Positions 405 through 41,869 of a stretch of DNA of 64,000 nt are shown piece after piece (the stretch's first letter is position 1; each line of letters begins with the position of its first letter). The stretch covers positions 310,001 through 374,000 of the forward strand of contig OZ218955.1 in the NCBI GenBank assembly GCA_965112735.1, given 5' to 3'. This stretch comes from Phaeosaccion multiseriatum. Lineage: Eukaryota > Protista > Ochrophyta, other classes. A program made the translations under genes and the position numbers. Below the pieces are notes generated by a model. That model was not told the origin of the DNA and ran no database searches. It was given only the letters and a program-made list of their open reading frames with translations.

Positions 405-1500
405 ATGAGTAGAGAAAGAGAAAGAGAAAGGGATGACACCTCTTTCACGTCTCCTCATCGATACGGGTCGTGGTGGGTGGGAGCAGGGAGCGCGGATCTC
501 AGCTCCGCCTACAGCCGGGTTTGCGATGACTCCTTCGCTCGCTGGCTGCTGGAGGGCTCAGCCGTAGACACCGATGCAGCCGCGGCAGCAAGAGCAGGAG
601 CAGGGGACGGGACCCTCTCGCCAGACGCAGGGCTGGGGCTTGGGAGCAGTACAGCGGATATGGACGAGCAACTTGCACTCCAGGCCGCGGAAAGCGTTCT
701 TACTGCAGCAACTGCAGCAGCAGCGAGGGGGCGGGCGGGAGAAGAGGAAGGCGACGGCGGCAGTGGTAGTGGGGATGGCGGGGACTTCCCCGAGCCTTCT
801 CTGGGCGGAGAGGGAGGGGAAGTGGGATCCCGCACTGCGGAGCATAAACGCGCAGCGGTGGAGGTGCTCACCCAAGGGCTGTACGACTCATGCCGCGTCT
901 TCTCCCCGTCCTTCAACGACGACATGGAGCGGCGCCTAGTGCTGCTGGGTCTAATGGGAAACAGTATCGTTGGCAGCAGCTGCGAAGAAGCCTCCCCGCC
1001 GGCTCCTGCCACGACCCCCTCTGCCGTATTTGGGAGTGGCGGTGCGATGACGTTGCTTTCGGTGGGAGGAGCAGCAGCGGAAGGAGCAGGAGCTGGGGGC
1101 TGGCTCGGAAGCGGAAGGGGAAAGCTGCTGCGCGTAAGGAGGAGCGAGCAAGGTGCGAGCGGCGAACGCCAACCCCAGGCCCAATGGATGGCGCAGGAGC
1201 CGCTCGACACGCTCACTGGCCTGGGCTCGAGGCACCACTTGCTGCTGCAGGGTCGAGACACCGCCAAGCTCCCCCTGCCCTACGCCCCGACGGAGCAGGT
1301 GGGATTGGAGATGCTGTGCGCCTTTCTGGAGGAGTTGCCGCCGGACAAGTGCCCCCCCGGGGCGGTGCGGAGGATGCAGGACCTGCTGCAGGCCCTTCGG
1401 CCGTCCGCGCTGTTTGAGGACCTCAGCAGAGTCGATCGGGGCTTCACAGAGCAGGTGGGGGGTGGAAGGGAGCTGATTCTACGCCTTGCCTGCTTGCCTG

Positions 1501-1548
<48 letters not shown>

Positions 1549-4500
1549 CATTGTGGGTGGGCATTGTGGGTGGGCATGATGTCTGTTGACACCAGCATTG
1601 CGTTACTCACTCGGAGAGTGTAAGACTGTTTGCTTGAACGCCTCTACGCTTTTGGTCTAACACCCCGTGCGTGTGTCCTCGCATCCTCCCGTCCTTTCTC
1701 TTCAATTCACAGGAGCTGCAGCTGAATCCCACTTCCTTCCTAGCAGCAATGGAGGTGAGGGAGGAGGAGGTTGAGGGTGCCGTGGGAGCGTTTGCCTTCT
1801 CTACATCCACCGTGCGGGCCAACAGTAACAGCGAGGCCTACCGCCCCATCCGCGCCCTCGGGTCGGACAGCTTCTACTGGAGCTCCGTTCAAGTGGTCAG
1901 TACCATGTATCAGTGTCAGGAATGTCAGGAGTATCAGGATTTGGTGACTTCCATGTGCTTGCATTGGGTCTTACGTAAGGGTCCATGAGTCCGTAGAATT
2001 GATGGCTCATGACTCATGACGTCACTCGCCCACCCATGCGCCCACGACCCACTCACGACTCAGGATTCCGCCCCCGATGCCGCCGCGTCGAGCACATCCT
2101 GGGGGGTGGTGTTTTCGTCGTACGTGTCTGTGAGCTCCGTTCGGCTCAAGTGGCACAAGGACTGCCTGCCGAGGGTGGTGGAGGTGTACGCATTGCTCAA
2201 GGACATGCAATCGCAGGTAATGTAACTGTAATTATATTTGATGGAGTCCGTCAGTCAATCAATCAATCCATTCGAATCTAATCGAGGAAATCTAATTCAG
2301 GTGATGCGATTAACCCCCCCTTTCGTTTCTTATCACTCCCACTCTCACACCCACGCCAACCCTACTTACGTACCTCTTACCTACCTACAACGTATAGGCT
2401 TACTACGCTTCGAGAAGCGAAGTCGAGAACGATCCTAACTACGTTCTGCTGGGCACCGCACTCGTTCCGTCGGTGGAGAACGGAGATGTGCTGGTGCTCC
2501 TGGAGACCTCGCTGGACGACCGAATACAAGGCCGGAACCTCAAACTGGAGGGACTAAGGATCCTGGCCATGAAGCTGACATTCAAAGGATTGGCCAGGTG
2601 CAATAGGCACGCTTACCACAAGCTCAAGCAGGCATGTTTCTACACGCCTCTCAAGGTGAGTGAGTGGGCGAGTGTGTGAGTGTGTGAGTGGGTGAGTGAG
2701 TGAGTGAGTAAGTGGGTGGGTGAGTGAGTGAGTGAGTGAGTGAGTGAGTGCGTGCGTGAGTGAGTGAGTGTGAGTGAGTGAGTGAGTGAGTGAGTGAGTG
2801 TGTGATTGAGTGAGTGAGTGAGTGAGTGAGTGAGTGAGTGAGTGAGTGAGTGAGTGAGTGAGTGAGTGAGTGGGTGAGTGAGTGGGTGAGTAAGTGAGTA
2901 AGTGAGTAAGTGAGTGAGTGAGTGAGTGAGTGAGTGAGTGAGTGAGTGAGTGAGTGAGGCTTCCGTCGTCCGATGTCAGATCGTCAGGGCGTTCCCTCCT
3001 CTTGACGACTGTGGGGCACACGTGCCATGCACGCACGACACCGACGCACGCACCCATGCACCGTCACCCTCCACCCCACACCCGACAATCTCGACAAGCT
3101 TACGTCTCCCTCTTTGTCCCTCTCCCTGTCTCTCTCCCTCTCCCCATCTCTCTCTTCCTCGCCCCTCCCTCACTCCGCCCCACCGTCACTCACCATCCCC
3201 ATGTGCCTCTAACCACACACGCACACACCCACACTCACTCGTGTCCCAGGGGGCTCTGCGTGTGTCTTCCCCGAGTCTCATCACCCGGCTGCACGAGTGG
3301 CTGTGCAAAGGAGCGGCCAAGGTGGTGGGGCAGGGCTCAGTCTTGGAGGGCTGTCTGATTGGTTGTCTGCAGGGGCTGGGCGTGGCCACGGGATCACTCG
3401 ACATCCTCCTCAGTCTCGCTGAGGTGCTCATGGCGGGGGGTGGGGACGGGAGGGACCACGAGGTGAGTGGATGGTAGCGGATGGCGTGAGTGGATGGATG
3501 GGTGGATGGGGTGTCCTTCATGGCTCCCCCCCCCCCCCCCATGTTTGTGGCTGGCCTGCGAAGAGCCTGCCCTCCTCCCCTTCCGTTGACACAAGAAGAA
3601 GGAAGAGCACTTCTCTCTGACCACCGCTGCTTCCAACTTGCTCAGCCTCTACCCTCCTCTCCTGCCCAACCCCACCAATCCCACCCGACTTTCGTCCTCT
3701 GTCCGGTGCGGTTATTCACTCACCCACCTGCTCTCTCCCTCTCTCTCTCTGCACATGGACGGGTGTGGTTGGGTGTTGTGTGGTGCTCAGGCGTCCCCCC
3801 AAGTGTGTGCAGCTCTGGCCCTGCTCGCCAAGCACATCCCCCGGTCCCAGTCCAAGGCCTCACCCACCCTGGGCCCCACCAGCAGCAGCAGCAGCACTGG
3901 CAGCTCCCTCTCCACCACCACCACCACCACCACTACAAGCACCGGGACCGGCACCGGTGAGAGCGGTGGCAGCGGCGGAGAGGGCAAAGTGCTGCGGACC
4001 GTGCGAGCTGTGTTTGAGCGTCTGTTCTGCCGGCGTCAGGGCTTCGCCATCCACCACGTGTTGGACATCCACACATGGTCACACTCTGTGCAGTGCGTGA
4101 GACGCCTCAAGGCAGCGGATGGAGGCAGCTCCGCCAGGCAAGAACCAAAGATTCGTTTGCAACGTATGCTTACTTTTGCTTACTTCAACGTCAGCTGAGG
4201 ACGGACGGAGAGGACGGTCGAAAGATGTTGGAAACATGTCCACCAGATGAGGAGGACACGTCAGTCAATCAGTCCCTTCGTGTAGTGTGTGTACTGTATT
4301 GACTCATCCCCTTCCTTCCCTTCCCCATACATTTTCTCCTCTCTGCTCTCTTTTCCCATCAATTTCTTACCCGTATGGTTCCGTCTATTGCCATCCATTC
4401 CCTACCATCCATCTGTTCCCTCACAGACACGCCATGACCTTTGTGAGCCTCCCTGTGACGCTGGACCACGGCATGGCCATGTGGGAAATGGCGCTGGGGG

Positions 4501-6560
4501 CCAATAGCGCGGTGTGCGAGGGCCTCCTCCTCGGCCTGGTGCGGCCCGCCACATTTGGCGACGCTGTGAAGGAGGAGGGTGGAACGTGGCTCGTGGATGC
4601 GGGCACGGGGAGCAAAGCTATCGCAGGAGGGGCCGGGGGAAGATCCGGCGATGGCAGTGGATGCGACGGTAGCCTGGGAAGGCTCCAACCCGGGGATGTG
4701 TTACGCTTCGTAGTGAATGCAGATGCGGGTACCATGACGGTGGAGCTCGTGATCGAGGCGGCTGCTGTATCCCAAAGTGGTGGCGCTGGTGGTACAGGCG
4801 TTGGTGCTCTGTCATCTTCTTCTTACGGCGCCGGCGCCAAGAAGAAACTGACATTCGAGAGGATAGGGGCGGGGTGCCAGCCTGCCGTAGGGTTCCGGGG
4901 CGACATTGCCGCGACGGTGCGAGCCGAAGTGGCCCTCCTCGGGGCTGGAGCGGTGCACCTCTGGACCCCAGATGGCGACGGCGACGGTGCGGCGATCAAA
5001 CAGGTGGCGAGTCTGCCCGAGGCGGCAGTGCGAGGGTGGCAAGGAGGCAAGCACGGCCAGCCGCGGCGAGGGAGATTCTTTTGGAAACGGGCGGCAGAGG
5101 CTCAGTTCCGAGGCAGCTTCCTCCCCAATGCGCTGTGCTGCATGGCACCGGTCCCGTCCCCGGCAGCCCCGCCCCCTCCCTCCTCCACGCCCCCCTTCCC
5201 GCCCCCTACACCCTACCCGGCTCCGCACACGCCCCCCTCGCTTCGACTCCGAGCTGGGGCTGGGGCTCCCCGAATGCCCTCCTCCTCTGCTCCACCACCA
5301 GCCCCTCTACCTCCCCTATCGTCTTCTCCTTCGGATGCTTCCTTATGGTTTCAGTTCCTGGCACATGGCCCCCCAGAGGGTACCATCCCAGGGGATACGC
5401 CCCCCCCCTTTCCGCCTTCTTCTATGGGAGGAGGAGTCAGTGGTGGTGGGGGGGGGGATGGTGGGATGGCAGCAGATGGCGGCACCAACAGTGAAGAACC
5501 ATCACGCGGAGAAGAAGAAGGAGGAGGAGAGGGCCAACTCACCGCAGAGGCAATCAACACCGACAGCAGTAAGTGGGCCACCTCAGTCTCTTACCAGCTC
5601 CCTCTCGACCAGTACGAGACCTTCCGGAGCTCCGTTGGCTTTGCAGACTCTTCCATACCCGTCCTTCGGGGCCGGACGGGCGGGGACAGGCGCCGCAACA
5701 GGCTGCTGAGCAAGGTGGTGTTCCAAGTCATCTGTGACTCTGTGCCGTTGTGGACTTCTCAGCCCCTCTGCGCAGCGGACGACAGGACCGAGGAGGTGAG
5801 GAAAGGGAAGGGAAGGGAGGGAGGGAGGGAGGGAGGGGGGGGTGGGGGCGAATCAGTACGAAAGGCACGACCCCACACACAAGCACTAGGTGGAGACCCT
5901 AGGTGGAGACCCTCGAAGTGCTCCGCCCAGAGGCACAAGCGCAAACTCAAACTGTCCCCCCCCCCCCCCGTCCACTGCCATCCTCACCATACGTACATCA
6001 GGTGGAGCTCTGTGTGCGACGTATTAGAGAGCTTGAGCTGCGTGTGCTCAGCGTAGCACCAACTGGCGAAGAGGAGATTGCTGCTGCGGCCGCGGCAATG
6101 GCGGATGCGGCAGCTGCCCCCCCCACAGAGTCGAGTGGAGTCGTCGCCTTGTGGATCAACCCAATACTAAAGGAGGTGCCAGGGCCGGGTCTGCTGTTGG
6201 AGGAGGAGGAGGAGGAGGAGGAGGAAGGGGAGGAAGAGGAAGATGAGGTGGTGGTGGAGGAGGAGGGTAGAGAGGCGGATACGCAACGAGCCCTAGACGG
6301 TGGGGGAGTAAAAGTGGTGGGTCCCTCCCCTCTTGACGCCACCCCTGGGCGGGGGAGCGTGAGGAGGAAGAGGGTGAGGGGGAGGAGCAGCAGCAGCAGC
6401 AGCAGTCTCATGGGCAGCAGAGGCGGCGATTTCCGATCGTTTTGCAAAGGCTTCCGTCGCAGTGCCGTGAGCGCAGGAGAATTTGCACTGTGCATGTGCG
6501 GCCGACCGGAGTGGCTGCATTCCGGTTACAAGCAACCGAAGCAGCAGCAGCAGCAGCATC

Positions 6561-6593
<33 letters not shown>

Positions 6594-9500
6594 TGACGCT
6601 CTGTCGGAGCAGAGGCGGAGGGGAGGGTGGAGGAGGGACCTCCCCAATACAAGCTCGGACTCCTCCGGCACAGGCTCAGAGACGAACGCTCTATGGGGCA
6701 GGTCTGGCGCTCATCGAGGGCATCGGAGATCTTGCCGCAGAAGTTAGTCGCCACCCTGAGCTGTACAGAGGCGGCGGGCAAGGGCTTGCGGGGAGGGCGG
6801 GGGGGGCAGGAGGAACAGGAGGAGGAGGAGCAGCAGGGGGGGCAGGGGGGGGAGCGGCGTTCTCACCGCAGTACCTGCCTTTTAGCGTGGAGACCACCGT
6901 TCCGTGTATGCAGCGCATGTGCCGTCTATTGGAGCAGCTCGTACCCACTGATGGGGACCTGGAAACCCTCAAGAGGGGCCTGAACGGAGGAGGAGGGGGG
7001 AAGGGGGGGGTTGCGGTGCTTTGTGCTGTCCTACGCATCGTGCGGGCCAACGTGCTCGGCCTAGGCTCTAGCAATAGCAATGACAATGACAGTGGTCAAG
7101 AGAAAGAGGAGCAGGACGATCGGCAGGAGCAGGAGGAGAAGGAGGAGGAGGAGAAGGAGGAGGAGGAGGAGAGGCGGCAGCTGCAGGCGATCGCACGGCG
7201 ACTTAGGCGGTTGCTGGAGCGGCTCCTGCTTCCTTTGCTGGCGTACACTCGTAGAGAACCAACCATCAATAGACCCCCCAACACGGCGGGGAGGGCAGCG
7301 GAAGAAGTGGGCATTGCAACTGAAACTGGAACTGTGCCTCTTGGCTCCTTGAGAGGCGAAGAGGAGGCCGTGGGAGAGGCTGTAGCTCGGGGCAGAGGAG
7401 GAAGAGAGGGAGGAGGAGGCAAGGCAGAGGAGGAGGAGGAGGAGGAGGAGGAGGAGGAGGAGGAGGAGGAGGAGGAGGAGGAGGAGGGCACAGGGGAAGG
7501 CGAGAACAGCCTCGGCCTCCTTGGAGAGGAGTTGTCGCTGACAGTGGAGGCGGGCATGCATTTTCTATACCCGAGCACTGCGCTGGTGACGGGCCTACTG
7601 CGGAAGCTTTTGAAATGCAGCCGCAGCCACAGTCCAAGTACGAGGAGTGGGGGAGAAGGAGCGAGGCGAGACGAGGAGCAGGGGGGCGAAGGAATCCGGG
7701 TCGAGGAGGAAGGGGAGGGTGATGGTGACGACCCCTTGGAGGAAGAGGAACAGAGGGAGACGCAGGCGATGCCTCCCAAGCAACTCTTGGTGCTGCTGCA
7801 GATAGTCCTAGGCCACATGTGCAAGACAGCGAGGTACGTACATTTGACCGGGTGTTGGGGCGTGTGGGAGCGTTGGTGCGGGAAGGAGCTGCTCCTCATA
7901 ACGGATGGGAGTGGTCTTATGTTGGGTGCTTTGAGAGCAAAACTTGCCTTGTCCTCAGAGCAGCGACAAGTAGCGCTGCAATCTGTTCCTGTCTCTGTCT
8001 CTTTGTGTCGCTGCGTAGTGTCGTATAGTGATGCTGCACCGTTCATCCCCCCACCCCCCACCATCCTCCTCTCACCCCATATGCCTCTTAATGCCTGTCT
8101 GTGGGTGCAGCGCCGAGGACATTATGATAAATATCTCCACGGCCTCTGAGATCTCTACGGCCTCTGAGATGGCAGTGGATGGGAAGGCCTCTTCTGTGGT
8201 GCTGGAGCTGTTCGAGCTCTGCTTCGAGTGGACTGCAAAAGTCGCCGCGAGGGACTGGAGGCCCTCAGAGGCAGAGGCAGCGCAGGGGCTTATCGATGTG
8301 CGTAGTGATGGAGGGAGAGGGAGAGGGGGTAGAGGGAGGAAGGTGGGGCCCACTCCTTTATAGCTGTGTGTGTGTGGGTGAGTGTGTGTGTGTGTGTTCG
8401 TACCCTCGCCTCGTGCTGTGTCTCGCTGTCTCATGTCGTGCACGTCGATTTTACATCTGCCAAATGTCACTGTGGATATATGTATATATAACCCATATCC
8501 ATGTCAACACACACAGGCCACCGCCGCGCTCGAGAACACGCTGTTTCGAGCGCACTACATGATGCTCGGAGCGGTAAAGAGCAGACCGATGGACACCACG
8601 GAACAAGTCGGGCGGCTGGTAAAGGCGCGCTGCTTCTTCGTGGAATACATGACCAAGGTGTTGGAGCGCTGCACCGCTGCACTTCGAGATTTGTGTGCGC
8701 GAGACATGGACAAGGTGAACAGAGGTAGGGCAAGTAGCAGGAGCAGCAGCAGCGGTAGGCATCTGTTGAACCTCTCTCCCGTGACCAAGCTCGCCCCCCC
8801 GGTGGTTACGCTGCTTTGCCTGCTATCGAGAGAGCTATGGCTGAGTCAGGCGCTGCTGCCTCAGCTACTGGAGCTGGTGGGCCGGCTCGAGGACGCTACT
8901 TTTCAGTTTTGCTCCTACGGCAATGAAATGGGAGTCCTACAAGAGCTGCAGAGGCTCGAACAGATGACGTGCACGAGGCGGAGATTAGGGTTAGGGCCCC
9001 TGGGCAGTGGGGAAGTTGGTGATACAGCGACAGCAGCAACAGAGGCCCGACACGCGCGATTGCGACGTGCCAGGAACGGCATCGAAGGTATCAGTGGCAT
9101 GATCGTCGAGCACACACGGGGTGGTGGTGGTGGAGGAGGTGGAGGAGGAGGAGGCGTGGCAGGAGGCGGCGGGGTGGCGGGACGGAGGGGTAGTGCTGCT
9201 GGTGGCGGCCCCGGGGGGTACCCCATGCAGGCCCTACAGTTTCATCCAACCTTGCACGGACCGAATGTGCAAGTGGCCTTGACGGGCAGCAACGGCGCTA
9301 GCACAGCCACAACCAACGCTGGAACAATTATGAACCTTGCCCTGCTCTATCTCCCCAACGAGGGCAACAGCCAGCGGCAGGGAGGGGGAGGGGACGAGGA
9401 AGAGGAGTTACTTGGAGTGTGGGAGAATCTCGGTGTGGGCGAGCACACATTCCAAATCCAAGTGCTTGCCGACGAGACGCCGGAAGACGACGAGGATCAG

Positions 9501-13347: not shown

Positions 13348-13384
<37 letters not shown>

Positions 13385-28300: not shown

Positions 28301-31300
28301 GGCGGGCTGCAGATGGGGGAGGTAGAGGCTGCTTCTGGTCACGCAGCGAGAGGGGGGGCAGGAGGAGCGATAGGGCCGGTGGAAGGATCGGGAGGAGGAG
28401 GAGGGGGAGGAGGAGGAGGGGAAGGATGGCAGTGGATGGATGGAGGTTTCCGAGAGGAGGAAGTGATGCAGCTCGTGCGCAAGTTGCTGCACAGCTTTTT
28501 GGACATGGAGAGGAGGGATGCGTCACCATCTTCATCTGCGATATCACCAACTGCCGCGGGAGAGGCAGGAGGATGGCAGGCCGGACGTGAAGCTTGTGCT
28601 GCTGTATCACCAACTGCTGGTGAAGTGGGACTGGGGCGAGGGGGCTTGAGTGGGAGTAGGAGTGTGGGTGTGGGTGTGGGTGCGTGTGCGTCACTGTCGC
28701 TGAGCCGAGTACTTGTCGATGAGACGGTGCGGCACTTCGTTCGCTCCACCAAGCCCGCTGACTCGAGGCAGATGCAGGTAAGGAGGGTGTAGGGGATTAG
28801 GCAGACGCCACGTATTAGGAGGGCGGGGGTTGACACCAGGTTTATATGGTAGAGGTAGGCACGTGCGTGCGTGCGTGCGTGCGTGAGCATGGCAGACGGG
28901 TCAGGCTTTGTTTGACCCTCTCTCGCTTTGCAGCCCATGTCTTTTTTCTCTTGTCCTACTTGTATGCTTCACTGGGGTTGCTATCATCCGCCTCCCTGAC
29001 TGTTTGACTGTTTGAATGTTTGACTGACTGACTGACTGACTGACTGGCTGACCGACTGACTGTAATGAATGACTGACTGACTGACTGATTGATTGATTGA
29101 TTGATAGATTGATGGACTAATGGACTGATTGGCTGACTATCTTCGCGCCCCCTCCCCACCTCTCTACCCCCCTCCCCTCTCCCCTCTGTGAGCAGGTGCG
29201 AGAGTCACTCCACCCGTACTTCCCCGTGTGTGAGTATCAAGGAGAGGTGGTCTTCAAAGGATGCACGGCCCTCCGAGTACACTTCGACCCCAGGTGTCGC
29301 ACACACGCCCTCTCGGTCCTGACACTCGCCATGGATCCGCTCTTCTTGAGGGTGGCGGGGCGCTTTTCAGGCGGACCCGGTTCCTTCAGGCCTCTCCTCA
29401 TTCACGGGAATCGCTTCTTCTTCAAGTTTTCCAGCAGGTGAGTCGATGAATGAATGTGTCAAGATAGGGGAGGGGGTACCGAAGTGTCTGACTGGCGTTT
29501 CAAGGAGAGGCCTCTCGCTCTCGCCCTCGCTCTCTCTCCTTCTCGCTCGGTCTCTCCCTCCTCTTATGTGTGTTTGTGTGTATGCGTGTGCCGATCAATG
29601 ATTTGTTGACACTTCAATGGGGTGGTATCTTGGCCTGTCAAGGCCTGGCCTGAGCGCTTCCTCTCCCCCCCCCCTCCTCTTCTTTCCCGATGGATGGCAC
29701 CCTACTGCAAGCAGGCTCCCCTCCCTGGCAGGGCAGCTCTCTGCCTGTTCGCACGGGTGGGGCTATCGCTTTAGTGTGGTGCCTCTCTTGGGCCTGCAGT
29801 GGACGCACGAGCGACAGGTGAGTGAGTGAGTGAAGGAGTCAGTGAGTACGTGACTGAGTGAGCGAGGCCGTGAAGTGCCTTCGTTCCTCGGGCTTTGCTC
29901 TGGCCTTATTTTTGTTGCTTTGTACGTACGTTCCCACTCTCTTCTCCATCCCTTCGTTTGATTCCCTCCGTCCCTCCGTCCGTCCCTCCGTCCCTCCGTC
30001 CGTCCCTCCGTCCGTCCCTCCGTCCGTCCCTCCGTCCGTCCGTCCCTCCGTCCCTCCGTCCGTCCCTCCGTCCGTCCGTCCCTCCGTCCCTCCGTCCGTC
30101 CGTCCCTCCGTCCCTCCGTCCCTCCGTCCCTCCGTCCCTCCGTCCCTCCGTCCCGCCCTCCGTCCCTCCGTCCCTCCGTTCCGCCCTCCGTCCCTCCGTC
30201 CCTCCCTCCGTCCCTCCGTCCGTCCCTCCCTCCCTCCCTCCCTCCCTCCCTCCCTCCCTTCCTCCCTCCCTCCCTCCCTCCCTCCCTCCCTCCCTCCCTC
30301 CCTCCCTCCCTCCCTCCCTCCCTCCCTCCCTCCCTCCCTCCCTCCCTCCCTCCCTCCCTCCCTCCCTCCCTCCCTCCCTCCCTCCCTCCCTCCCTCCCTC
30401 CCTCCCTCCCTCCCTCTCTCCCTCCCTCCCTCCCTCTCTCCCTCCCTCCCTCCCTCCCTCCCTCACTCCCTCCCTCCCTCCCTCCCTACCTACCTCCCTA
30501 CCTCCCTCCCTCCCTACCTACCTACCTACCTCCCTCCCTCTCTCCCTCCCTCCCTCCGTCCCTCCCTCCCTCCCTCCCTCCGTCCCTCCCAAAAGGTTCT
30601 GCAAGACGCCAGTCTGGAATGGGCATGTTTCCTCCTCGACTTCCTCTTGGACCTTCACACAGCGCAGGCCCTCCCCCGGGGGGCTGTGCACAACGGGACC
30701 GTGTTTGCGGCCCTTGTGCGCTACCTCCGCTCGGGGGGTGTGCCTTACAAGGAGAGAGTTGTTGACCTCCTCACGCGGCTGCTGCGGCACACACACCTCT
30801 TCAGCGAGACCGATCCGCCGGACTTGGGTGCGTGGGCGCGCGCGTGTGAGGGTCTTTGGCGTGGGCGTGTGCGTGTGCGTGTGCGTGCGTGGTGCACACA
30901 TTGCTGTTGGGGGTTGGTGTTGTGGTGGCGGGGTCTGGGGTGGGGCTTTTGTTTCAAATCAGGTGTTTTGTCGTGTGTGTTTCCACATACCCCCTGTCTT
31001 CCTGACACCCCCTGTCTGCGCACCCTCTCCAGGCAAGTTGTCGGGGATCATATCCCTTGTGGCAGAGCGCTGTGCTGTCCGCAGCTCCGCCCTTAGAGAG
31101 AGAAGGAGGATGGCAACCAATGGCACGGGCAGCGCCGGCGGCGGCGGGGGGGGGGTGTCAGGACAGGGGGGCGACCACCCCGGTGGCCATCGTCAGGACA
31201 GTCAGGACTCAGACAACTTCAGCGACTGGGTCAATCAGAGGATCTTCGGGACCCCCAGAGTATTAGCAGGACGAGGAGGAGGAGGAGGAGGGGGGGGCGA

Positions 31301-34300
31301 GGGGTCGACAGGAGGTGGAGGAGCAGGGGCGGGGGCGGGGGCAGGTGGAGCAGGGGCAGGAGGGGTAGGGGCGTGCCACGTGTCTTCGCGGCTGCAAGCT
31401 CTTGTGGAGCTCAGCGTGGCCGCTCAGATCGCGCAAGAGACAGAGACAGACACACACAGAGAGCGACGAGCTCTTGGAGAAGATGGACGGCAGCAAAGTA
31501 TGCCGCTGTCGAGACCGGACCATGACAACGTGCCGCCATTGTCACTGCAGCTGCCGGCCTTTTCCCACGGAGACGAGCTTGCGTCCGCCCAGGGAGAGGG
31601 AGGCGAGCTTGACGCGGAGCCTCTGGCGACGGCGGCTGCGCTGCGGTCGGTGCTGGAGGTGGCTGACGCGATTCACCACCGTCGCCCTCTGCCTGACGCC
31701 CTTGTGTGTCAGGCCTACGTGGACGGGGTTGGTGTGCATGAGGAGGTGGATACGTCACAGTTGGCGCTGGAGGGGTTAGTGCTTCAGCAGCAGCAGCAGC
31801 AGCAGCAAGGGGAGAAGTCTGAGGAGGCCGCTCCTGTGGGGGTCGAGGGGGTGGAGAAGGGCTCGAGCAAGACCTGCCGTGATGAAACCGACGGTATTGC
31901 ATGTGGCAAGGCCAAGGTCAAGGGCAAGGTCCGGGTGCGCAAGGCGATGGGCGATGGGATCACGCAGTATGTCAGTGGGAGAGGCGAGGTGGTGTTTCCC
32001 GGGGCTGCCGCACTGCTTGTGCGCCTGGTTCTCTGTGGAGGACAAGGTGACGATGATGACGAGGAGGATGATGAGGGTGGGGAGGGTGGAGCAGCAGCCC
32101 GTTTCGAGGACAAGGATTTACCCACATTCGTGAGCAAGGGTGCGAGGCTGGTGATTGATGCGACTGGCGGTGAGACGGAGGAGGAGGAGGAGGAGGAGGA
32201 GGAGGAGGAGGAGGAGGAGGAGAAGGGGGAGGAGGAGGTGGAGGTGGAAGGGGAGGATGGGAGCATAGACAGCAACCCAGGGTGTGAAGAGCGCAAGGAG
32301 AACGACCCCGGGGTGGAAGAGAGCAAGGAGAACGACCCAGGGGTGGAGGAGAGCAAGGGGGCGGGGAAGCAGGAGGAGACCGAGGGTCGTTCAGAAGCGC
32401 TACTCGACGAGGGGCAAGGGCAGCAGCAGCAGTTGGTGATACAGCACGGCTCGGTGGGACCGCCGCGGCCGATGGAGGCGGAGGCCGTCGTTCCATCGGC
32501 CGTCGAAGGTGTTGTAAGCGACACGGCGGCACCGTTGCCTGCACCACCAGCAGGCGGTGATACAGCAGCAGAGGCTGAGTCAGGAGGGGAAGAGGTGACC
32601 AGCAGCCCTATCGAAAAGAGCACGCACCACCAGCAGTCCACAGATGGCAGTAATGTGATTGAGGTGCATGAGGACGAGGAGGAGAAGAAGGAGAAGAAGA
32701 AGAAGAAGAAGAAGAAGAAGAAGGAGGAGGAGGAGGAGGAGGGGAAGGAGGAGGAGGAGGAGGAGGAGGAGGAGGAGGAGGAGGAGGCGGAGGAGGAGGA
32801 GGAGGAGGAGGAGGAGGAGGAGGAGGAGAAGGAGGAGGAGGAGGAGGAGGAGGAGGAGGAGGAGGAGGAGGAGGAGGAGGAGGAGGAGGCGATACAACAT
32901 GCCGCCCCGCAGCTGACGATTCGTGTATCCGACGACCCCTCCCTCGATTTGCGCCAGGGCCAGTCACCATATGCTGCGCAGGGTCAGTCGGTTCCATCTG
33001 GATGGGGGGGGGGGGAGGAGGAAAACAGAGTGCCGCCTCCCCCCCCCGGGACTGCCTCTCCCCCGGGGGGGGTGCAGCAGCCGGAGTCTCCTCCGCCGCT
33101 GATTCGCTTGCCCCCCTCCTCTCTTGCGAAGGCTCCACCGAAGAGCACTGCCCCCCGGGGTGTCGTCCCCTCCGAAGAGAAGGTTCAGCAGATGGCAGAC
33201 TTGGGTAAGTCAACGATGGAGAGGGGGGGTGGGTACATTAGGCATCGTCCAAATGATGGGTCGGCTTCGGGTGGGTGGTGCTTTGGCTTCTGCTCACGCA
33301 TCTAGAGGGGATGCTTCCTCCTTTCCGATGACTATTCTTCCCTCCTTGACTGACTGACTGATTGACTGATTGACAGGTATGGATGCGGAGTGGTGTCGAG
33401 CCGCTCTACGCCGCTGTGGAGACGACTCAGACAGAGCCACGGGATATCTCTTCGACCATGAGGCGGAAATGCAGGGGATGGTGGAGGAGGACTCGGCTTT
33501 GGCATTGGCGGAGGCAGAGGAGAGGGCCCGCCTAGCAGCACCAGTTAGTGAGGCGGTTGTAGGATGGGGTGACACAGCAGGTGTGGACGATGCAGCAGCA
33601 AGGGCATTAGGAGGAGGAGGAGGGGGAGGAGGAGGCGGAGGAGGAGGAGGAGGAGGAGGAGGAGGAGGAGGAGGAGGAGGAGGAGGAGGAGGAGGAGGAG
33701 GGGGAGGAGGAGGAGGCGGAGCAGCAGCAGGAGGAGAAGGACAAGAAGGAGAAGGAGAAGAGCAAGAGGGTCAGGAGGTACCAGCACCTCTCGTGGTGGA
33801 CGGCGCTGCCCCTGAGACGGAGCAGGGGCAGGGGATAGCAGTGGATAGCAGCGACCAAGACGAGAGTCCCTACGGATGGGGCTCCTCCCTACCGGACATG
33901 TGGGGGGCGGCAGCTCACGGGGATGGGGAGGTGGATGGAGATAGGGGGTATATAGGGGGTGGAAATGGCAATGGCTGGTCGCAGCACGGGAGGCAGAGCA
34001 GCCTTGAGGTCGACTACGGCGAGGGAGACGAGGGCAGGTTAGTGTGAGTTTCAGTGTCGGGCTCGGGGAGAGTTGAGTTTCAGGACAAAGTGTTGTGCCT
34101 GTCTTTCGCCGCCTTAGCTGCAGCTGTGAGTCCCACTGGGCGGATGAGGTACATGCTACTCACGCTCCGTCCGTCCGTTCCGCAATGACTAACTTCACAC
34201 ACCGCCGCCCGCCCCATGCACCCTTTGCCCCTCCGCCATCCACTGCCATCCCCCCTACCCAGCACGGACGAGTGCCCGTCCCTCGTCAATGAAGACGGCG

Positions 34301-37300
34301 ACAGCCCCCTACACGGCAGCAATTGCGACTTTCACGGCAGCAGCTCCGCCCCGGCTCCGAACGGGGCGCTCACCTTGCCCTTCCCTACAGATGCCGCCGA
34401 CCGTACCACCAACGCGGCTGGTGTGGGGCAGGGGCAAGGGCAGGTCAATGAGGTTGGCGACGATGCGGATGACAACCTTGCGGAGGTCGACCCTTCCGCC
34501 CTTTCACAGATGACGGCGATGGGGTTGGATGTGGAGTGGGCCCGGGCGAGTCTGCGTCGATGTGCGAATGAGGTGGCGGCGGCGGTGGAGTTTTGCTTCA
34601 GCAACGACATGGCGGCTCTTGTTATGATGGACGCCAGGACAGAGGCAAGGAGGATAGAGAGGCGCGAGCATCAGCAGCAGCAGCAGCAGCCGCCGCTGAG
34701 TGAAGTGCTTGGAGTGACTCCACCAGTTGGTGATACAGCAGGGGCACGAGGAGCCCCGGAGGTTGGGGAGGCGCAGCAGCAGCAGCAGCAGCAGGAAGAG
34801 GAGGAGGAGAAGAAGAACGAGGGTTTCCGAGTGGAGGAGGAACGCGTGCTGTCTTCCGAGGAGCAGCGTAGGCGGGCATGGGCGGAGGCGGTGAGCTCCG
34901 TGACGACGGCAACTAGGCTGCAGGAGGGACTCATGCTGGCGTTACGGGTGGTTGGGGAGATGCCAGCGGATAGAGAGAAGGGCAGAGGAGGAGGAGGAGG
35001 AGGAGGAGGAGGAGGAGGAGGAGGAGGAGGAGTGGGTCCTATTCTACGTGCGGCGAACACCATCGGTACAGTGCCTTCGCTGGACGCGCACTGCCTGTTT
35101 GAGCTTGTAAGGCCCCCTGCCAGCACCCTCTCCAGGCTCTTGCAGCAACAACAAGACGCTGGCGGGCAAGTGAGCGCTAGCTGCGCACGCCGTCTGTCCC
35201 GGGGGTGCGTTTTCGTCCTCCAGGCTGCGTCTTGCAGGGCCTTCCTCGCGGTTACGGCGGACGGAGCTCTGGGCCTGGGTACAGACCTTTCCGAGGGCAC
35301 TCCCCTGCTACTCACGCTACTCCCGGATATCCAGACAAGGACGACTAATAGGAGGGTGCGAGCGTCGAGGCGGTTGGTGCTTCAGACTTGGAACGGGAGG
35401 AAAGTGCTGAGGCTCACGGAGGATGGGGAAGGGTTCCGATTCGAGGCCATGCCCCAGATGCCCCAGATGGCAGTGGAGGGAGGAGGGATGGCAGTGGATG
35501 GAAACAGCGTCCTGGAGGTGATGGTCATGGCTGAGCGACCCACGGTGGAGGCCAATGTGGAGTGGGAGTCCCACTTCGTCACATTCGCCTCCCCTGGGCG
35601 GGCCCTCGGAATGGGCAGTGGGGCCATTGGCGACGACCAGCTTCTGGCCAGATCGGCGGCGGTATCACCAACGGGTGAGGCTGAGGGTGGAGTACCCCAT
35701 GTGCCTGGTGCTGCGCCTGTGGTGCCTGCCTTGCTTGGCCCCTACGTGCGCGGGCGGATATCAGAGACGGCTACCGCAGCGGCCTCCTCCTCCCATGAAT
35801 CAAGGGCGGCAGGAGCAGGACCGGCTGGAGGAGGAGGAGGGGGGGCAGGGGCGACGCCGTCCGAGGAGCCGAGCGGGTGGGTTGCAGGAGAGAGCAACGC
35901 AGAGCAGTGGCTACAAGTGGACTTGCTCACGCCGACCAAGCTCACGGGGTTGGCGCTACAGGGAGGTGGGGAGGGCGCAGGCATGGTGCAGCAGTTCAAC
36001 ATCCGTGTCAGTGAGGACGGCCGCCGCTGGGCAGTCGTAGGGCAGCAGGAGCAGGAGGAGGGGCAAGGGCAGCACGGAGGAGAAGGAGATAGGGAAGGAG
36101 GAGGAGGAGGAGGAGGAGGAGGAGGAGGAGGAGGAGGAGGAGGAGGAGGAGGAGGAGGAGGAGGAGGAGGAGGAGGAGGAGGAGGAGGAGAAAGAGGAGG
36201 AGGTCGTTCGACTCTTCCTCTCTTGCCCGGCAACTACGACCCCAGGCAGGTGACGATGTATGTCTTCACGGGACCTTCGGGCAACGGAATCGTCGCCAGG
36301 TTTGTGCGCATATGCCCAACTCGCTGGCCGGGGAGTGGGCAGCAGGGCTCTTCTTCCACCGGAGCTGAAGGAGGAGAAGCCGTAGACAGGCTCGCCAACA
36401 AGGCCAAGGGCTTGTGTCTGCGCCTAGAGCTGTTCGGACCGGAGGTTTACGAGTTTTCCGGAGAGGAATTGGCTGCTGTGACTGGAGCTGGGGCTGTATC
36501 ACCAACTGCTGCCCTAATGGTTAGCGGCGGAAGTGCTGCCCAGAAAGGTGCCCTCTTGGCCAAGCAGCGTGCGGTGCTGCAGCAATGGCGACGGCGGCAG
36601 ATTCGCATTGAGGGGGATACCCTGCGCTTCTCCTTCGTTGCCCCGATGCTGCTCCGGACAGATCAAGAGAAAGGGGGGGATCAGGAGAAGGAAAGGGAAA
36701 GGGAGGAGGAGGGAGAGGAGGCCTCGACGCCGCAGCTACCGAAGGGTTTCAGGCTTTGTGTGACTGCGGTGGGCACGCCCGCCTCTGAGACGCTTCAGTG
36801 GCTGCAGGGGCGGAGGAGGGAGGTGGAGGAGGTGGGAAGGGTGATGCGAGACTGGCCCAAGCAGGCGGATGAAGAGCTTATGGAGTGGGCAAGCGCGCCG
36901 GGCAGGAGGGGGATGAGCGGGATGGCAAGAAGGGTGGGGTTGGGGAAGGGGGGGGGCATGACCAAGAGGGAGAAGGGCAAGCTGCAGGTGAGAGAGTGTT
37001 TGGGGGGGGGGGGGAGGACGCAGATAGGGAGAGAGATAAGAGTGAGGGCCCTCTGTATTTGTGTTCGCGTGTCTTTGCCACGCCTTTCCCTCACTCTTAC
37101 CCTCATCATTCCCAGCTAAGCCCCCCCCCCCCCCCCCCTACATATACCTTACCCCGCCCCTGCCCCCACCTCCCTCGCAGGTGCTCGCCTCCGTGCAACC
37201 CCCCGTGCTGCGTGCCATCCGCTACGCCCTCTTGCGTCACTTCGACGCCCAGCTCCGCACGGTCGTTCCCTTTGTCGACCTCCAGACACGCTCCCCCTGG

Positions 37301-40071
37301 AGGGCCGGGCCCCGCCTCCGCCGAGTGGGAAGGTGCATCTCTTTCGAGCTCAAGATGTCGCTACTCGAAGATGCACTGAGGCAGACGGGCTATGTAGGAC
37401 CGTGTGTAAGTGTGCGCCTTGACCACCACCTCAAGTTGACGAGTCTGGACAGAGAGGAGTCGGACCCTGCAGTGTCGCAGGTGGGTTAGGGAGGTTACTA
37501 CGTGCAGTTGGGTCACACCTCTGTCTGTCCTGACACCCCCCTCTCTCCTGTCCTGACAACCCTTACAGTGCATCTTCGTGCAGGCGTTTCATCAGTTACA
37601 CTTCAGACCGCCACACGTGCTGCGTCTCAATCAGGTCCGTCCCCATATTTCTGTCTCGCTAACGCACTCACTCGCTCACTTACTCACTCACTCACTCACT
37701 CAATCACTCACTCACTCACTCACTCACTCACTCACTTCCTTACTCCCTCCCTCACTCACTCACTCACTACTCACCCCCTCACTCACTCACTCACTCACTC
37801 ACACGCTCACTCGCTCTCTTCTCATTCACTCACTCACCCACCGAAACACACACCCACGCACTCCCCCCCTCACCCACGCACTCCCCCCCTCACCCACGCA
37901 CTCCCTCCCTCACTCACTCACTCCCTCACTCACTCCCTCCCCCACTCACTCCCTCACTCACTCACTCACTCACTCCTTCACTCACTCACTCACCCCCTCA
38001 CTCACCCCCTCACTCCCTCCCTCACTCACTCACTCCCTCACCCTCACTCACTCACTCACTCACTCACAGGTTGCCGGCAAGGTGTTCGACGTGTCCTTCC
38101 AGGGAGAGAGCGGCATCGACGCTGGAGGAGTGTTCCGAGATGCCATCACAGAGATGGTTGAGGACCTTCACAGCCCCTCCCTACACCTGTTGGTGCTCTG
38201 CCCCAACGGGAGGAGCCAGTTGCAAGTCAACGCGGATCGCTACATCCCCTCTCCGGAGTGTACCTCCCCACTGGCCATTCAGCAGCTCGAGTTTGTGGGT
38301 GAGTGGGGTGGATGGCAATGGATGGCAGGGAAGGAGGGAGGGGTTGCCAAGACTCGAGCGTAACCAAACGCTTTGTTCTGTCATCTGATGACTGTCCTCC
38401 CCAAACACACACTCCTGCTCATGCTCCTCCTTCTCCTCCCCCCCATCCACTGCCATCCGCGGTCCAACCTCAGGCAAGCTGCTCGGCATGAGTCTCCGCA
38501 CCAAGGCCACGCTCCCGTTCTGCTGCCCTCAGCTGCTGTGGCGGGGACTGCTGGGGCACGAGCTCTCGTTGGATGACCTCGCTTCGGCTGACACAGGAGC
38601 CGCACACCTCATTGAGGCGCTGAGGGACGAGGATATGACTCAAGGTGAGAGGGAGGGAGGGAGGGAGGGAGGGAGGGAGGGAGGGAGGGAGGGAGGTAAA
38701 CACCATATCAACCTGCGAACGTGAAACGGCCCCTTTACCTAACGTATAGCCTGACTTATGTATTTATCACTTGTGTGTGTTCTGTCTATCCCCGGGCTCC
38801 TCACCCATATGCCGACGAGATACTCCTCCTAACCCATATACCTTTCCCTATCCTTCCATCTCCACCCCCATCACCATCCTCATGTGCCTACAGAGGCCTT
38901 CGATGCCTCGTACGGAGATGCGCTGACCTTCACCGCCACCGGAACAACGGGTAAGGTCACAGAACTCATCCCGGGGGGCGCGACCGTCCCGGTGACCTTT
39001 AGCAACCGACAAGACTACAGCCGCAGGGTGGAGGCGTTCCGCGTGACGGAGCTGGACAGGCAGATCGCGGCCATGAGAAGGGGGCTCGGGACCATCGTGC
39101 CGCTGCGGCTGCTCGAGCTCTTCACTTGGCATCAGGTGGGTGCGTGGGTGGGTGGTGGTGTATCAGATCTAAGTCTCGCGGCGGTTTCATAAATAGACCT
39201 CAACGCTCCCTTCGATCAATACCAGCCAGCGGAGGATCACCCACAGCAAGAGGCGGACAATGAGTAGTAGTACTTAAGAGAGGATGGGTTGGTGCTACAC
39301 CCTCCGTCTACTGCCATCTGTCTCTGCCACGACGTGTTGCTAATAGTGAAGAATCTCTGACCATGTCTTTCCGCCCGCGCCCCCCACTAACGCTTGCTGG
39401 GCCCCACTCCCTGACTTACCAACTTGTTAGGTGGAGGTGCTGTGCGCAGGCCAGCCCGACATTGACCTCGTGCTGCTGCAAGAGCACACGGACTATCGCG
39501 GCTACAGCAAGGAGAGTCCCACGGTGCAGCGCTTCTGGGCGGTGATGGAGGGCTTTAGCAGCCACGAAAGGAGTCAGTTCATACGCTTCGTGTGGGGCAG
39601 GAGCAGGCTTCCTCCACGTGGCAGGCCGTGGCCACAGCGGTTCAAGGTGCATAAGATGCAGAGGTGCGTGCGTTGGTTATTCAAAGGATGTAGCTGTAAA
39701 GAGGTGTGTGTGTTGGTGATTCAAAGGATGTAGCTGTAAAGAGGTGTGTGTGTGGTATGGTATGTGTTACCAGGTTCATGCAATGGTGTAGCGATGTACA
39801 GGCGGCGCGTGCGTGCTTGTGTTGTTGTTGCAAGTTACTCAATGAAAGGGCACCTTACCCCCCTTTCTTTGGGCGCGACTTTCCTGATTTGTTCGCTCCC
39901 TCCCGACCCGTCTCCCGACCCATCATCATCAGGTGTTCGGACGCCACTCTACCGGTGACGCACACGTGCTTCTTTAGCATCGAAATCCCGGACTATAGCT
40001 CAGAGCGAGTGCTGAGGGAGCGGCTCAGGACGGCGCTGAACTATGGAGTAGGGGGCATCCTCAACGCGTGA
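405..40071 (+). CDS. Giant multidomain HECT-type E3 ubiquitin ligase (~10,070 aa, 37 exons)
   Basis: Phase-consistent GT-AG exon chain assembled by eye: 405-1454, 1713-1895, 2064-2216, 2398-2655, 3250-3462, 3791-4096, 4195-4259, 4427-5795, 6002-7833, 8111-8297, 8517-9851, 10082-10898, 11181-11496, 11604-11964, 12300-12809, 13150-14781, 15016-20424, 20600-21335, 21603-22320 (contains a 1-nt frameshift), 22496-22621, 22915-23028, 23255-23617, 23951-26509, 26687-28777, 29196-29437, 29715-29817, 30596-30827, 31033-33204, 33377-34037, 34263-36987, 37181-37480, 37569-37634, 38070-38298, 38474-38644, 38894-39135, 39431-39663, 39933-40071 (sum 30,218 nt). Domains continue cleanly across junctions and the chain ends in a complete HECT domain. 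The start ATG at 405 is uncertain because it directly follows an acceptor-like cttccctccccag. Confidence 0.8.
1800..2655 (+). other. N-terminal DOC/F5-8C-like (galactose-binding jelly-roll) domain of the giant ligase
   Basis: Spliced exons 2-4 give RANSNSEAYRPIRALGSDSFYWSS...WGVVFSSYVSVSSVRLKWHKDCLPRVVEV...MKLTFKG, the pattern of APC10/DOC and discoidin-like folds. Boundaries are approximate. Confidence 0.5.
2656..2957 (+). repeat. (GAGT)n intronic microsatellite starting at the donor site
   Basis: About 300 bp of gtgagtgagt... immediately after exon 4. Confidence 0.95.
4060..4930 (+). other. SPRY/B30.2 domain 1
   Basis: GMAMWEMAL...GLLLGLV...LQPGDVLRFVVNADAGTMTVE...LTFERI...QPAVGF. Confidence 0.65.
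5020..6170 (+). other. NPCBM/NEW2 putative carbohydrate-binding domain, interrupted by a Pro/Gly-rich insert
   Basis: RGWQGGKHG...FRGSFLPNALCCMAP [~140 aa insert] SVSYQLPLDQYETFRSSVGFADSS...VVFQVICDSVPLWTSQPL...VELCVRRIRELELRV...ALWINPIL matches the NPCBM consensus order of motifs. Confidence 0.65.
9230..10120 (+). other. SPRY/B30.2 domain 2
   Basis: LQFHPTLHGPNVQV...GEHTFQIQV...SLGFALV...IGYLSTG...YGRPYGTGDMVTMTV...VSFAVNGQSQGLV...LVPVVVL. Confidence 0.75.
10690..11910 (+). other. SPRY/B30.2 domain 3
   Basis: GVHMWDVLV...MCVGVT...GWGLLNSG...YCAPLHTGDVVTVVLDVSAGTLAYKLNGADCGVAF...LYPCVSLREPGDSVRL across exons 12-14. Confidence 0.8.
11972..12125 (+). repeat. (CTAC)n degenerate intronic microsatellite
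   Basis: ctacctacccacccacctacc... Confidence 0.9.
15930..17245 (+). other. LamG/concanavalin-A-like (pentraxin-like) domain with long low-complexity loops
   Basis: TTLTAWVRP...IASGEWAHVAVV...AQVYVNG...WQIG...GFKGFVAHVCVWGTALTGWEV...LLSYWPL. Confidence 0.75.
21725..22155 (+). other. Two UBA domains (UBA1, UBA2)
   Basis: ELSMLGFELPICVKSLELNGDQPDRAAEWLL and EELVLITNVPPKLCFRALEMFSDSREASVNWLL. The two lie in different frames in this assembly. Confidence 0.7.
22290..26820 (+). other. Five tandem F5/8 type C (discoidin/FA58C) domains
   Basis: Repeated pattern such as GYITDSQWSASS...ARL...W...YLQVNLG...VSGVATQG...VTAFRLQLSLDGEDW...AKFVRFLPVSWQEHISFRVEV, and GMESGKVADSQLTCSS...GRLNS...AWVAG...QWLQIDFKSRQIVTGISTQG...FKGNADNTSIVSHVL...LRCEVY. 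Confidence 0.9.
28996..29137 (+). repeat. (GACT)n/(GATT)n intronic microsatellite
   Basis: tgactgactgactg...gattgattga upstream of acceptor 29195. Confidence 0.9.
29196..29785 (+). other. CUB-like domain of the ES.HPY...FD.RC...WGY.F.V type (as in HECTD4/ZZEF1-like proteins)
   Basis: VRESLHPYF...VVFKGCTALRVHFDPRCRT...IHGNRFFFKFSS...GWGYRFSVVP. Confidence 0.65.
29963..30590 (+). repeat. (CCGT/CCCT)n intronic microsatellite, ~630 bp
   Basis: Compound ccctccgtccgt, then ccct, then ctac array ending at acceptor 30595. Confidence 0.95.
32670..32889 (+). repeat. Coding (GAG/AAG)n tract, poly-Lys then ~60 Glu
   Basis: Within exon 28 of the giant ligase. Comparable coding (GGA)n poly-Gly tracts lie at ~33610-33720 and ~36097-36190. 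Confidence 0.9.
33175..34605 (+). other. Two UBA domains (UBA3, UBA4)
   Basis: EEKVQQMADLGMDAEWCRAALRRCGDDSDRATGYLF (split by intron 33205-33376) and VDPSALSQMTAMGLDVEWARASLRRCANEVAAAVEFCF. Confidence 0.8.
35590..36440 (+). other. Sixth F5/8 type C (discoidin) domain
   Basis: ALGMGSGAIGDDQLLARS...GWVAGESNAEQWLQVDLLTPTKLTGLALQG...VQQFNIRVSEDGRRW...LPGNYD...ARFVRICPTRW...CLRLELFG. Confidence 0.85.
37569..40071 (+). other. HECT catalytic domain
   Basis: FDVSFQGESGIDAGGVFRD...EFVGKLLGMSLR...ELIPGGATVPVT...QIAAMRRGL...FWAVMEGFSSHERSQFIRFVWGRSRLP...LPVTHTCFFSIEIPDYSS...LRERLRTAL. The catalytic Cys codon is at 39967-39969. Confidence 0.97.
37665..38066 (+). repeat. (CTCA)n intronic microsatellite running into the acceptor
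   Basis: cactcactca...cactcacag|GTT. Confidence 0.95.
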
Positions 40072-40407
40072 TGGAGGGAGGGGAGGAAGTAAGTAAGTGA
40101 GTAGAGTGAGTTGAAGTGAGTGGAGTGGGGTGATTTGAGTGAATGAGTTGATGTGAGTGGAGTGGGTGATTTGTAGTTTGTGTGAGTGCGTTGATGTGAG
40201 TGGAGTGGGTGGTTTGTGTGAGTGCGTGGGGTCTCGTAGCCCGCTGTGGGGAGAGACGACAGAGAAGGGAGGGACACAAGAGAGAGTAGGGCAGAGAGCA
40301 AGAAAGCGAGAGGACAGAAGCAGAGCGAGGGTGGGAGGGGGGAGAGGATTGGGGCGGGGCTGAGAGTACCAGCTTCGCTCCATCGAGAGGAGGGTCTTGA
40401 GGGGGCT

Positions 40408-40418
40408 ATTATATATAC

Positions 40419-40453
<35 letters not shown>

Positions 40454-40590
40454 TATATATATATAATATATATATTATATATATATAATTTATATTATAT
40501 ATATATAATTTATATATATATATATATAAATTACTATAAATTATTAAATATGTATATATATATAATTATATATATATATTATATATATAT
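40408..40590. repeat. Degenerate (TA)n tract between genes 1 and 2
   Basis: About 180 bp, almost purely A/T, in an otherwise GC-rich window. Confidence 0.95.

Positions 40591-41827: not shown

Positions 41828-41869
<42 letters not shown>

Follow-up and report, generated by a model that had tools for sequence, protein, structure and literature searches.

Can a single 40-kb gene encode a HECT-type ubiquitin ligase of some ten thousand residues? The question is raised by nucleotides 405-40071 on the + strand of a stretch of the Phaeosaccion multiseriatum genome, C6:310001-374000 of a genome of 67 Mb in 22 contigs, which is referred to below at its full length of 64,000 nucleotides (nt) as the window. 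An initial annotation had proposed one HECT gene of ~10,000 residues at this place. The evidence assembled here suggests, with a probability of about 0.7, that 405-40071 (+) is one gene of 37 exons coding for a cytosolic HECT-type E3 of ~10,190 residues (~1.05 MDa) in this stramenopile alga.

Exon chain, orthologues and the HECT end

The gene was modelled with a codon model trained on long frames and a dynamic-programming exon chainer, which allowed GT-AG introns and scored them with splice matrices trained in iterations, and the exons were then refined by orthologue alignments. The resulting chain consists of 37 phase-compatible GT-AG exons running from an ATG at 405 to a stop codon at 40069-40071, the sole stop being this terminal one. 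The predicted coding sequence comprises 30,567 nt or 10,188 residues with a mass of ~1.05 MDa, and the largest exons measure 5,409, 2,725 and 2,559 nt. This independently built model reproduces the earlier count of 37 phase-compatible exons totalling ~30.2 kb, with single exons of 5.4, 2.7 and 2.6 kb. Open reading frames (ORFs) with 200 codons or more occupy 78% of the + strand between 405 and 40071 but 33% of the - strand, where the longest has 399 codons, and in a shuffled-sequence control coverage by such ORFs fell to 2% with none longer than 306 codons. The open frames of the + strand include stretches of 1,848, 1,613, 1,143, 976, 748, 611, 601, 511 and 481 codons, and their excess over the - strand and the shuffles indicates coding sequence on the + strand that is not due to chance.

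What holds these exons together as one gene? A search with the protein encoded by exon 30 led to P0079, the C-terminal half of an MMETSP orthologue, whose cluster holds P0151 together with intronless transcript contigs of 12.8 kb (L003-L005). P0151 is a 7,338-residue ORF of MMETSP Transcript_9759, marked 'complete', and its alignment with the window is collinear from ~5.6 kb as far as the stop codon, with NPCBM, SPRY2, SPRY3, exons 15-18, both UBAs, the discoidin array, a conserved module, UBA4, FA58C 6 and HECT following each other in this order. A second orthologue, P0153 (ENA, 7,981 residues, with SPRY, Laminin_G_3, UBA_7, FA58C and HECT), runs collinear with the window beginning at 11.2 kb. 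The residue numbering of P0151 runs without gaps across eight introns at 28.7-30.8 kb and 37.0-40.0 kb, including introns of 418, 778 and 435 nt, and the remaining large gaps are closed by domains that straddle introns, FA58C 1 and HECT being spread over five exons each and SPRY3 over three. By sequence comparison, a single gene from ~5.6 kb to the end is thus well supported, the transcript-level support being that of a relative. Since exon 7 physically links SPRY1 to the NPCBM part that is covered by the orthologue, one gene would extend from ~4.4 kb to the stop. The single ~10,000-residue HECT gene of the initial annotation hence finds backing in a relative's transcript between 5.6 and 40 kb and in splice signals only over the first 4 kb.

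One of the contigs clustered with P0151, L003 (JGI 3300017188), carries in its segment 1-1391 extra ORFs at 3-317 and 482-1330 ahead of an ORF of 3,726 residues. The MMETSP assembly reads the split ORFs of L003 as one ORF of 7,338 residues, suggesting that public copies of this family are fragmented by frameshifts.

The assignment to the HECT ligases comes from exons 33-37 (38070-38298, 38474-38644, 38894-39135, 39431-39663 and 39933-40071, together 38070-40071). Profile, PDB and homology searches of the gene were run exon by exon, the joined 10,188-residue product being used for length, mass and composition, and the HECT domain therefore appears in pieces. These score 22.7, 52, 59.3 and 39.2 bits with Pfam and cover positions 42-300 of the 306 in the profile. 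For comparison, the uninterrupted HECT domain of P0079 scores 240 bits over profile positions 12-301. The start of the domain is provided by exon 33, which aligns to the HECT start of P0151 and P0153, and the HECT exons are 38-68% identical to P0151 7002-7338 and 38-70% identical over both orthologues. HECT domains were also among the PDB matches, exons 36-37 aligning with their C-lobe. The catalytic Cys is encoded by a TGC codon at 39967-39969 within the motif LPVTHTCFF, and the stop follows 33 codons later, placing the domain at the extreme C-terminus, with an AT-rich spacer behind it. Judged from sequence, the C-terminal 390 residues make up a HECT domain that is complete and includes the catalytic Cys, and the protein is thus predicted to accept ubiquitin from an E2 in thioester linkage and to pass it on to substrates.

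Modules from the N-terminus to the HECT domain

Which domains precede the HECT end? The order given in the initial annotation (DOC-like, SPRY, NPCBM, two SPRY, LamG, two UBA, five FA58C, CUB-like, two UBA, FA58C, HECT) stands to different degrees along the protein. HECT and the 5 + 1 FA58C domains are recovered by Pfam, the four UBAs give weak matches, and SPRY3, NPCBM and Laminin_G_3 appear below threshold in the proposed order. SPRY1 is recognised by a motif, and the DOC-like and CUB-like labels lack statistical support and have to be regarded as unverified.

Exon 1 (405-1565) begins with the ATG at 405 and encodes a low-complexity N-terminus without Pfam match. Just ahead of its donor, which is the first of the gene, lies a perfect (CTG)16 at 1501-1548 that encodes Leu16 with hydrophobic flanks. 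This is either a transmembrane-like stretch, although the ligase is supposed to be cytosolic, or an indication that the true end of exon 1 lies further upstream. Exons 2-4 (1713-1943, 2064-2221 and 2415-2655) are those formerly called DOC-like. No match to ANAPC10 (PF03256) was found in the window, nor in exon-wise searches at E-values up to 10, in which the joined sequence of the three exons was not searched. Comparison of these exons with the genome's own APC10 gave Smith-Waterman Z-scores of at most 1.2, and when a DOC-like exon was compared with the whole genome, only the self-match and no paralogue was returned. Exons 5-6 (3250-3462 and 3596-4092) are helical and Ser/Thr-rich with no known domain.

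Exon 7 (4427-5795) contains the SPRY1-like segment (~4434-4950), which was called from its motif without statistical support, a Pro-rich linker and the N-terminal half of the NPCBM-like domain (~5583-5780). The latter reaches a Pfam E-value of 0.18 and aligns to P0151 residues 3-44 with a Z-score of 5.1 (0/300 shuffles). The remainder of the NPCBM-like domain, a helical region and runs of Glu and Gly follow in exons 8-9 (6002-7833 and 8111-8297), and exon 10 (8517-9851) combines a helical region with SPRY2 (~9150-9851). Searches with SPRY2 gave no Pfam match and, among PDB sequences, only Gly-run or chance matches; its look-alikes in the ESM-Atlas, a language-model based comparison, are SPRY clusters (0.92, 23/30), and it aligns with a Z-score of 5.3 to P0151 761-934, a SPRY domain of the orthologue. 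SPRY3 is interrupted by two introns in exons 11-13 (10082-10898, 11181-11496 and 11604-11964), with its last strands in exon 13. It scores 14.4-17.1 bits, under the Pfam cut-off of 26.3, and matches P0151 1131-1270 and P0153 244-299.

The Gly/Ala-rich and helical exons 14-15 (12300-12821 and 13150-14826) show weak collinear matches to P0151 1568-1644 and P0153 963-1026. The 5,409-nt exon 16 (15016-20424) is likewise helical or of low complexity except for a Laminin_G_3-like segment at ~15940-17010, for which Pfam gives 15.2 bits (E 0.025) at 16132-16260, below the cut-off of 27.6, and the ESM-Atlas returns Laminin_G_3 look-alikes (0.96, 21/30). The precomputed Pfam domains of P0153 include both PF00622 (SPRY) and PF13385 (Laminin_G_3). 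An intron modelled within exon 16 at 15654-15851 was dropped, as orthologue alignments argue against it.

Exons 17-19 (20600-21335, 21603-22008 and 22128-22320) carry UBA1 (~21740-21844; Pfam UBA_7, E 0.005) and UBA2 (~22050-22170), the latter being conserved with P0151 3441-3524. The first FA58C domain (22290-23990) is split over five exons, 19-23, namely 22128-22320, 22496-22621, 22915-23082, 23255-23617 and the start of 23951-26509, where it gives Pfam fragment matches and aligns to P0151 3534-3585, thereby tying the UBA exons to the large FA58C exon. This exon 23, of 2,559 nt (23951-26509), contains FA58C 2 to 4 and the beginning of FA58C 5. Copies 2-5, in exons 23-24, reach 32.4, 26.9, 43.1 and 61.2 bits for F5_F8_type_C, FA58C 3 (26.9 bits) falling just below the Pfam cut-off of 28.2 bits, and the ORF as a whole gives an E-value of 1.5e-41. 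Within FA58C 5 lies an in-frame intron of 177 nt (26510-26686) with an (AGGG)n repeat, a splice score of 11.8 and a matching gap in the P0151 alignment. Exon 24 (26687-28777) completes FA58C 5 and continues into a Gly/Ala/Ser-rich and helical stretch. Together with FA58C 6 in exon 30 (~35827-36400; Pfam 55 bits, E 1.2e-14) the predicted protein has six F5/8-type-C (discoidin) domains, arranged as 5 + 1.

Exons 25-27 (29196-29437, 29715-29817 and 30596-30845) form the module that had been labelled CUB-like. Between 29196 and 30845 it is the best-conserved part of the gene outside HECT, with 56-72% identity to P0151 4835-5025 and P0153 4769-4953 in an alignment that is contiguous across three introns. 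Neither the window exons nor the contiguous orthologue sequence matched a Pfam family, the PDB sequence search yielded nothing meaningful (Gly-run or chance matches only), and a single-sequence AlphaFold prediction of the orthologue's module was unusable at a pLDDT of 48. Acidic low-complexity sequence and UBA3 (~33377-33500) are found in exons 28-29 (31033-33270 and 33377-34037), the region 33370-33525 being matched by four short UBA-containing proteins (P0055, P0067, P0089 and P0123). The 2,725-nt exon 30 (34263-36987) holds UBA4 (~34489-34605; UBA_7, E 8e-4, a weak match), FA58C 6 and a pre-HECT region, and aligns to P0151 6438-6797; the UBA of the orthologue exceeds the Pfam cut-off. Exons 31-32 (37181-37480 and 37569-37634) are pre-HECT and helical and match P0151 6878-7000 contiguously across the intron.

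The repeats of the locus fall into two groups. All non-triplet repeats reported by Tandem Repeats Finder lie inside modelled introns, several beginning right at the donor: GTGA (2656-2958 and 23618-23682), CTAC (11973-12133), GTAT (21336-21410), AGGG (26513-26572), CTGA (28996-29136), TCCC (29963-30590), CACT (37665-38067) and GAGG (38649-38696). The triplet repeats GGA and GAG sit in exons, where they encode runs of Gly and Glu, and the product, as calculated for the penultimate model of 10,181 residues, is composed of 15% Gly with ~27% low complexity. Once the repeats had been mapped, an over-permissive chain of 83 exons and an intermediate model that read the TCCC and CACT microsatellites as protein were rejected. 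Inspection of doubtful gaps by eye recovered the SPRY exon at 11604-11964, the discoidin exon at 22915-23082, the true end of HECT exon 36 at 39663 and the 177-nt intron at 26510-26686, and the 66-nt exon 37569-37634 was added through orthologue alignments. Tetranucleotide and octanucleotide microsatellites, several of which (the GTGA repeats) start exactly at the GT donor, abound in the introns of this gene, the exons having triplet repeats only, and make a handy intron marker in this genome. Behind the stop codon the GC content drops to 0.44 with a (TA)n tract at 40407-40590, a composition that marks true intergenic sequence and differs from that of the introns. The flanking ORFs 40880-43162 (+), 45009-45881 (+) and L002:9016-9858 (-) have no Pfam match.

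Alternatives to a single intact gene

What speaks against one intact gene over the entire length? Several observations weigh against it. The transcript evidence comes from a relative, and most of the domain calls outside FA58C and HECT are under Pfam thresholds. A homologue search with the 1,848-residue ORF returned none, its length limits having excluded giant relatives, and the search with exon 30 gave mostly generic discoidin proteins, P0079 ranking 79th. This poor yield suggests that much of the protein is fast-evolving or poorly constrained. With the N-terminal 1,400 residues of P0151 as query, a single weak match was obtained. Two further points, one at the 5' end and one between UBA1 and UBA2, each lead to a specific alternative.

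The first concerns exons 1-6 (405-4092), for which no homologue and no Pfam domain were found and which lie outside the coverage of P0151. Moreover, the donor of exon 6 is weak (score 2.4) and an ATG at 4434 lies 7 nt past the acceptor of exon 7, immediately ahead of SPRY1, so that a separate upstream gene is conceivable. The locus would then consist of two tandem genes, one of ~830 residues from 405 to ~4195 (TGA at 4196) and a giant HECT gene of ~9,350 residues starting at ATG 4434. P0151, however, begins in the middle of the NPCBM-like domain and is thus 5'-truncated and uninformative on upstream exons. In addition, two genes would have to accommodate a 3' untranslated region (UTR), a promoter and a 5' UTR in the 238 nt of 4196-4433, and the exon chain is phase-compatible across exons 6 and 7. 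The composition of the spacer is that of an intron as well: the candidate intron 4093-4426, with a GC content of 0.51, a pyrimidine tail of 72% and a CACAG acceptor, is like the other 35 introns and unlike the AT-rich intergenic spacer 40072-40880 (GC 0.44, (TA)n) behind the stop. Some gene on the + strand does start near 405, since the upstream neighbour lies on the - strand. The join of 405-4092 to exon 7 is predicted from splice signals only, and a division into two tandem genes appears unlikely, although of the alternatives it fares best.

The second point is a break of frame at 21930-22033, where no positive-scoring GT-AG pair joins the frames of UBA1 and UBA2 and where the automatic splice solution removes half of the conserved UBA2. 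If this were a true frameshift, in a recently disabled gene (pseudogene) or a mis-assembled locus, no protein of 10,000 residues would be made. Against this, all other exons are open, including the ORFs of 1,848 and 1,613 codons on either side of the break, and the catalytic Cys of the HECT domain is retained. The break coincides with a G7 run followed by a (GAG)n tract, a context prone to 1-nt errors in long-read assembly, and a short atypical intron (e.g., of 50 nt) could also account for it. As the downstream sequence is intact and UBA1 and UBA2 share one ORF in P0151, a real frameshift is less likely than an indel of the assembly or a short atypical intron, and the break at ~21.95 kb is not a gene boundary. 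A frameshifted locus is therefore considered improbable. Three or more head-to-tail genes, such as one for a SPRY/LamG protein, one for a discoidin array and one for a HECT ligase, are hardly credible, as the only arguments for them are the general ones that gene predictors tend to fuse neighbours and that introns of 418-778 nt exist, whereas in a relative all parts follow one another in this order within a single transcript ORF, the largest gaps are bridged by domains, and tetranucleotide repeats fill large and small introns alike.

Possible function and relation to known HECT ligases

How might one gene of 37 exons act through its product? Ubiquitin would be loaded by an E2 onto the HECT Cys and from there transferred to substrates. 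The remaining ~9,800 residues would form a long flexible scaffold of helical and low-complexity spacers, carrying putative beta-sandwich modules, i.e., three SPRY-like, the NPCBM-like, the Laminin_G_3-like, the discoidin and the conserved module. The SPRY, LamG, NPCBM, discoidin and conserved modules would hold substrates or ligands, and the four UBA-like domains would hold ubiquitin or ubiquitin chains, favoring the extension of chains or the recognition of targets that have been marked already. Discoidin, NPCBM and Laminin_G_3 modules normally bind glycans or lipids outside the cell. Their combination with a ubiquitin ligase raises the question of glycan- or membrane-directed ubiquitination in algae. 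It could be imagined that this protein, which would be the largest HECT ligase predicted so far (~10,190 residues), is a cytosolic sensor that ubiquitinates damaged membranes, precursors of the cell wall or lumenal glycans that have become exposed, although this proposal is highly tentative and rather doubtful. If true, a sensor of this kind would parallel, among HECT enzymes, the F-box ligases that recognise sugars, and would be conserved in a clade specific to protists.

Where does the gene stand among the HECT ligases? The nearest named homologues are found in oomycetes and diatoms, in keeping with a stramenopile, and databases hold many SPRY/UBA/HECT proteins of 4,500-6,900 residues from oomycetes, diatoms and unnamed protists. 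A HECT-domain phylogeny, advised by the initial annotation, was computed with the orthologues as proxies for the split HECT domain of the window and with a midpoint root, which is arbitrary. P0151 and P0153 are sisters in this tree (100/99) and form with four other unnamed giants a clade (98/96) apart from the clades of HERC2, HECTD4 and HUWE1. A supported clade of its own thus emerged for the orthologues, and its position relative to the HERC2 and HUWE1 groups hinges on the arbitrary root. Ranking by E-value places HERC2 and oomycete SPRY/LamG HECTs above HECTD4 and HUWE1. The gene may be assigned to a clade of giant SPRY/UBA/(FA58C) HECTs that is specific to protists and would be related to class I (HERC2-like). 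Further loci in which HECT pieces adjoin SPRY matches are present in the genome, among them C3:4004410-4041843 (-), C16:1946068-1958344 (-), C4:67007-69895 (-) and C7:3899367-3902936 (-), and as they sit in open frames of 1,000-2,200 codons several giant SPRY-HECT genes appear to exist in this alga.

Closest to the window gene are its two orthologues, which share the succession NPCBM-like, SPRY, SPRY, LamG, two UBAs, FA58C array, conserved module, UBA, FA58C and HECT. They are shorter by 2,200-2,850 residues, P0151 being 5'-truncated and P0153 beginning at the equivalent of SPRY3, whereas the window gene has longer Gly/Glu/Ala spacers and an additional N-terminal part of ~830 residues (exons 1-6) that neither of them confirms. 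Because the database orthologues are truncated, the locus offers a fuller template for the protist-specific giant HECT clade, and it provides a clean case of a megadalton gene of 37 exons that automated annotation would probably fragment. The initial annotation did not recognise the architecture from any characterised protein; in view of the collinear orthologues in databases, and of the SPRY + Laminin_G3 HECTs catalogued in heterokonts (PMC3673628), it is not without parallel.

The latter survey defined class I as the SPRY-bearing HECTs and described a heterokont family, HECTHe1, with SPRY and Laminin_G3 (Grau-Bove et al., 2013; PMC3673628). Judged by this domain description, HECTHe1 is like the window gene in being stramenopile and large, and its SPRY and Laminin_G3 lie upstream of a C-terminal HECT domain as do the putative ones of the window gene, but F5/8-type-C, NPCBM or multiple UBA domains are not reported in the survey, and the words 'discoidin' and 'F5_F8' do not occur in its text. 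Among animal families HERC2 (~4,830 residues) is the nearest named one to the C-terminal region of the orthologues (E 1e-64 to 1e-59, 32-34% identity) and it too is a giant HECT of the scaffold type that bears beta-sandwich modules. HERC2 has half the size of the window gene and falls into a different clade of the HECT tree than the orthologues, and no match to its modules RCC1, MIB_HERC2, Cyt-b5, ZZ and ANAPC10, nor to Cul7, was found in any exon or ORF.

A precedent in size is PfHEUL of Plasmodium falciparum (PF3D7_0826100), a HECT ligase of 8,591 residues and ~1 MDa (PMC12007708). It resembles the window gene in its mass, which is also inflated by low-complexity sequence, and in the catalytic Cys near the C-terminus. 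Unlike the window gene it is a member of the HUWE1/TOM1 family (DUF908), devoid of SPRY, FA58C and LamG, and the HUWE1 clade is well separated in the tree from the two orthologues, the window HECT itself standing outside the tree. With PfHEUL at 8,591 and the orthologues at 7,338 and 7,981 residues, the earlier view that the protein would be roughly double the known giants does not hold. HECT ligases of ~1 MDa are already on record, and the knowledge of HECT chemistry is left unchanged. The gene is best seen as a new, perhaps record-size example of an already catalogued but uncharacterised group of giant protist HECTs, comparable to PfHEUL in mass and to HECTHe1 in its combination of putative SPRY and Laminin_G3 domains with a C-terminal HECT domain.

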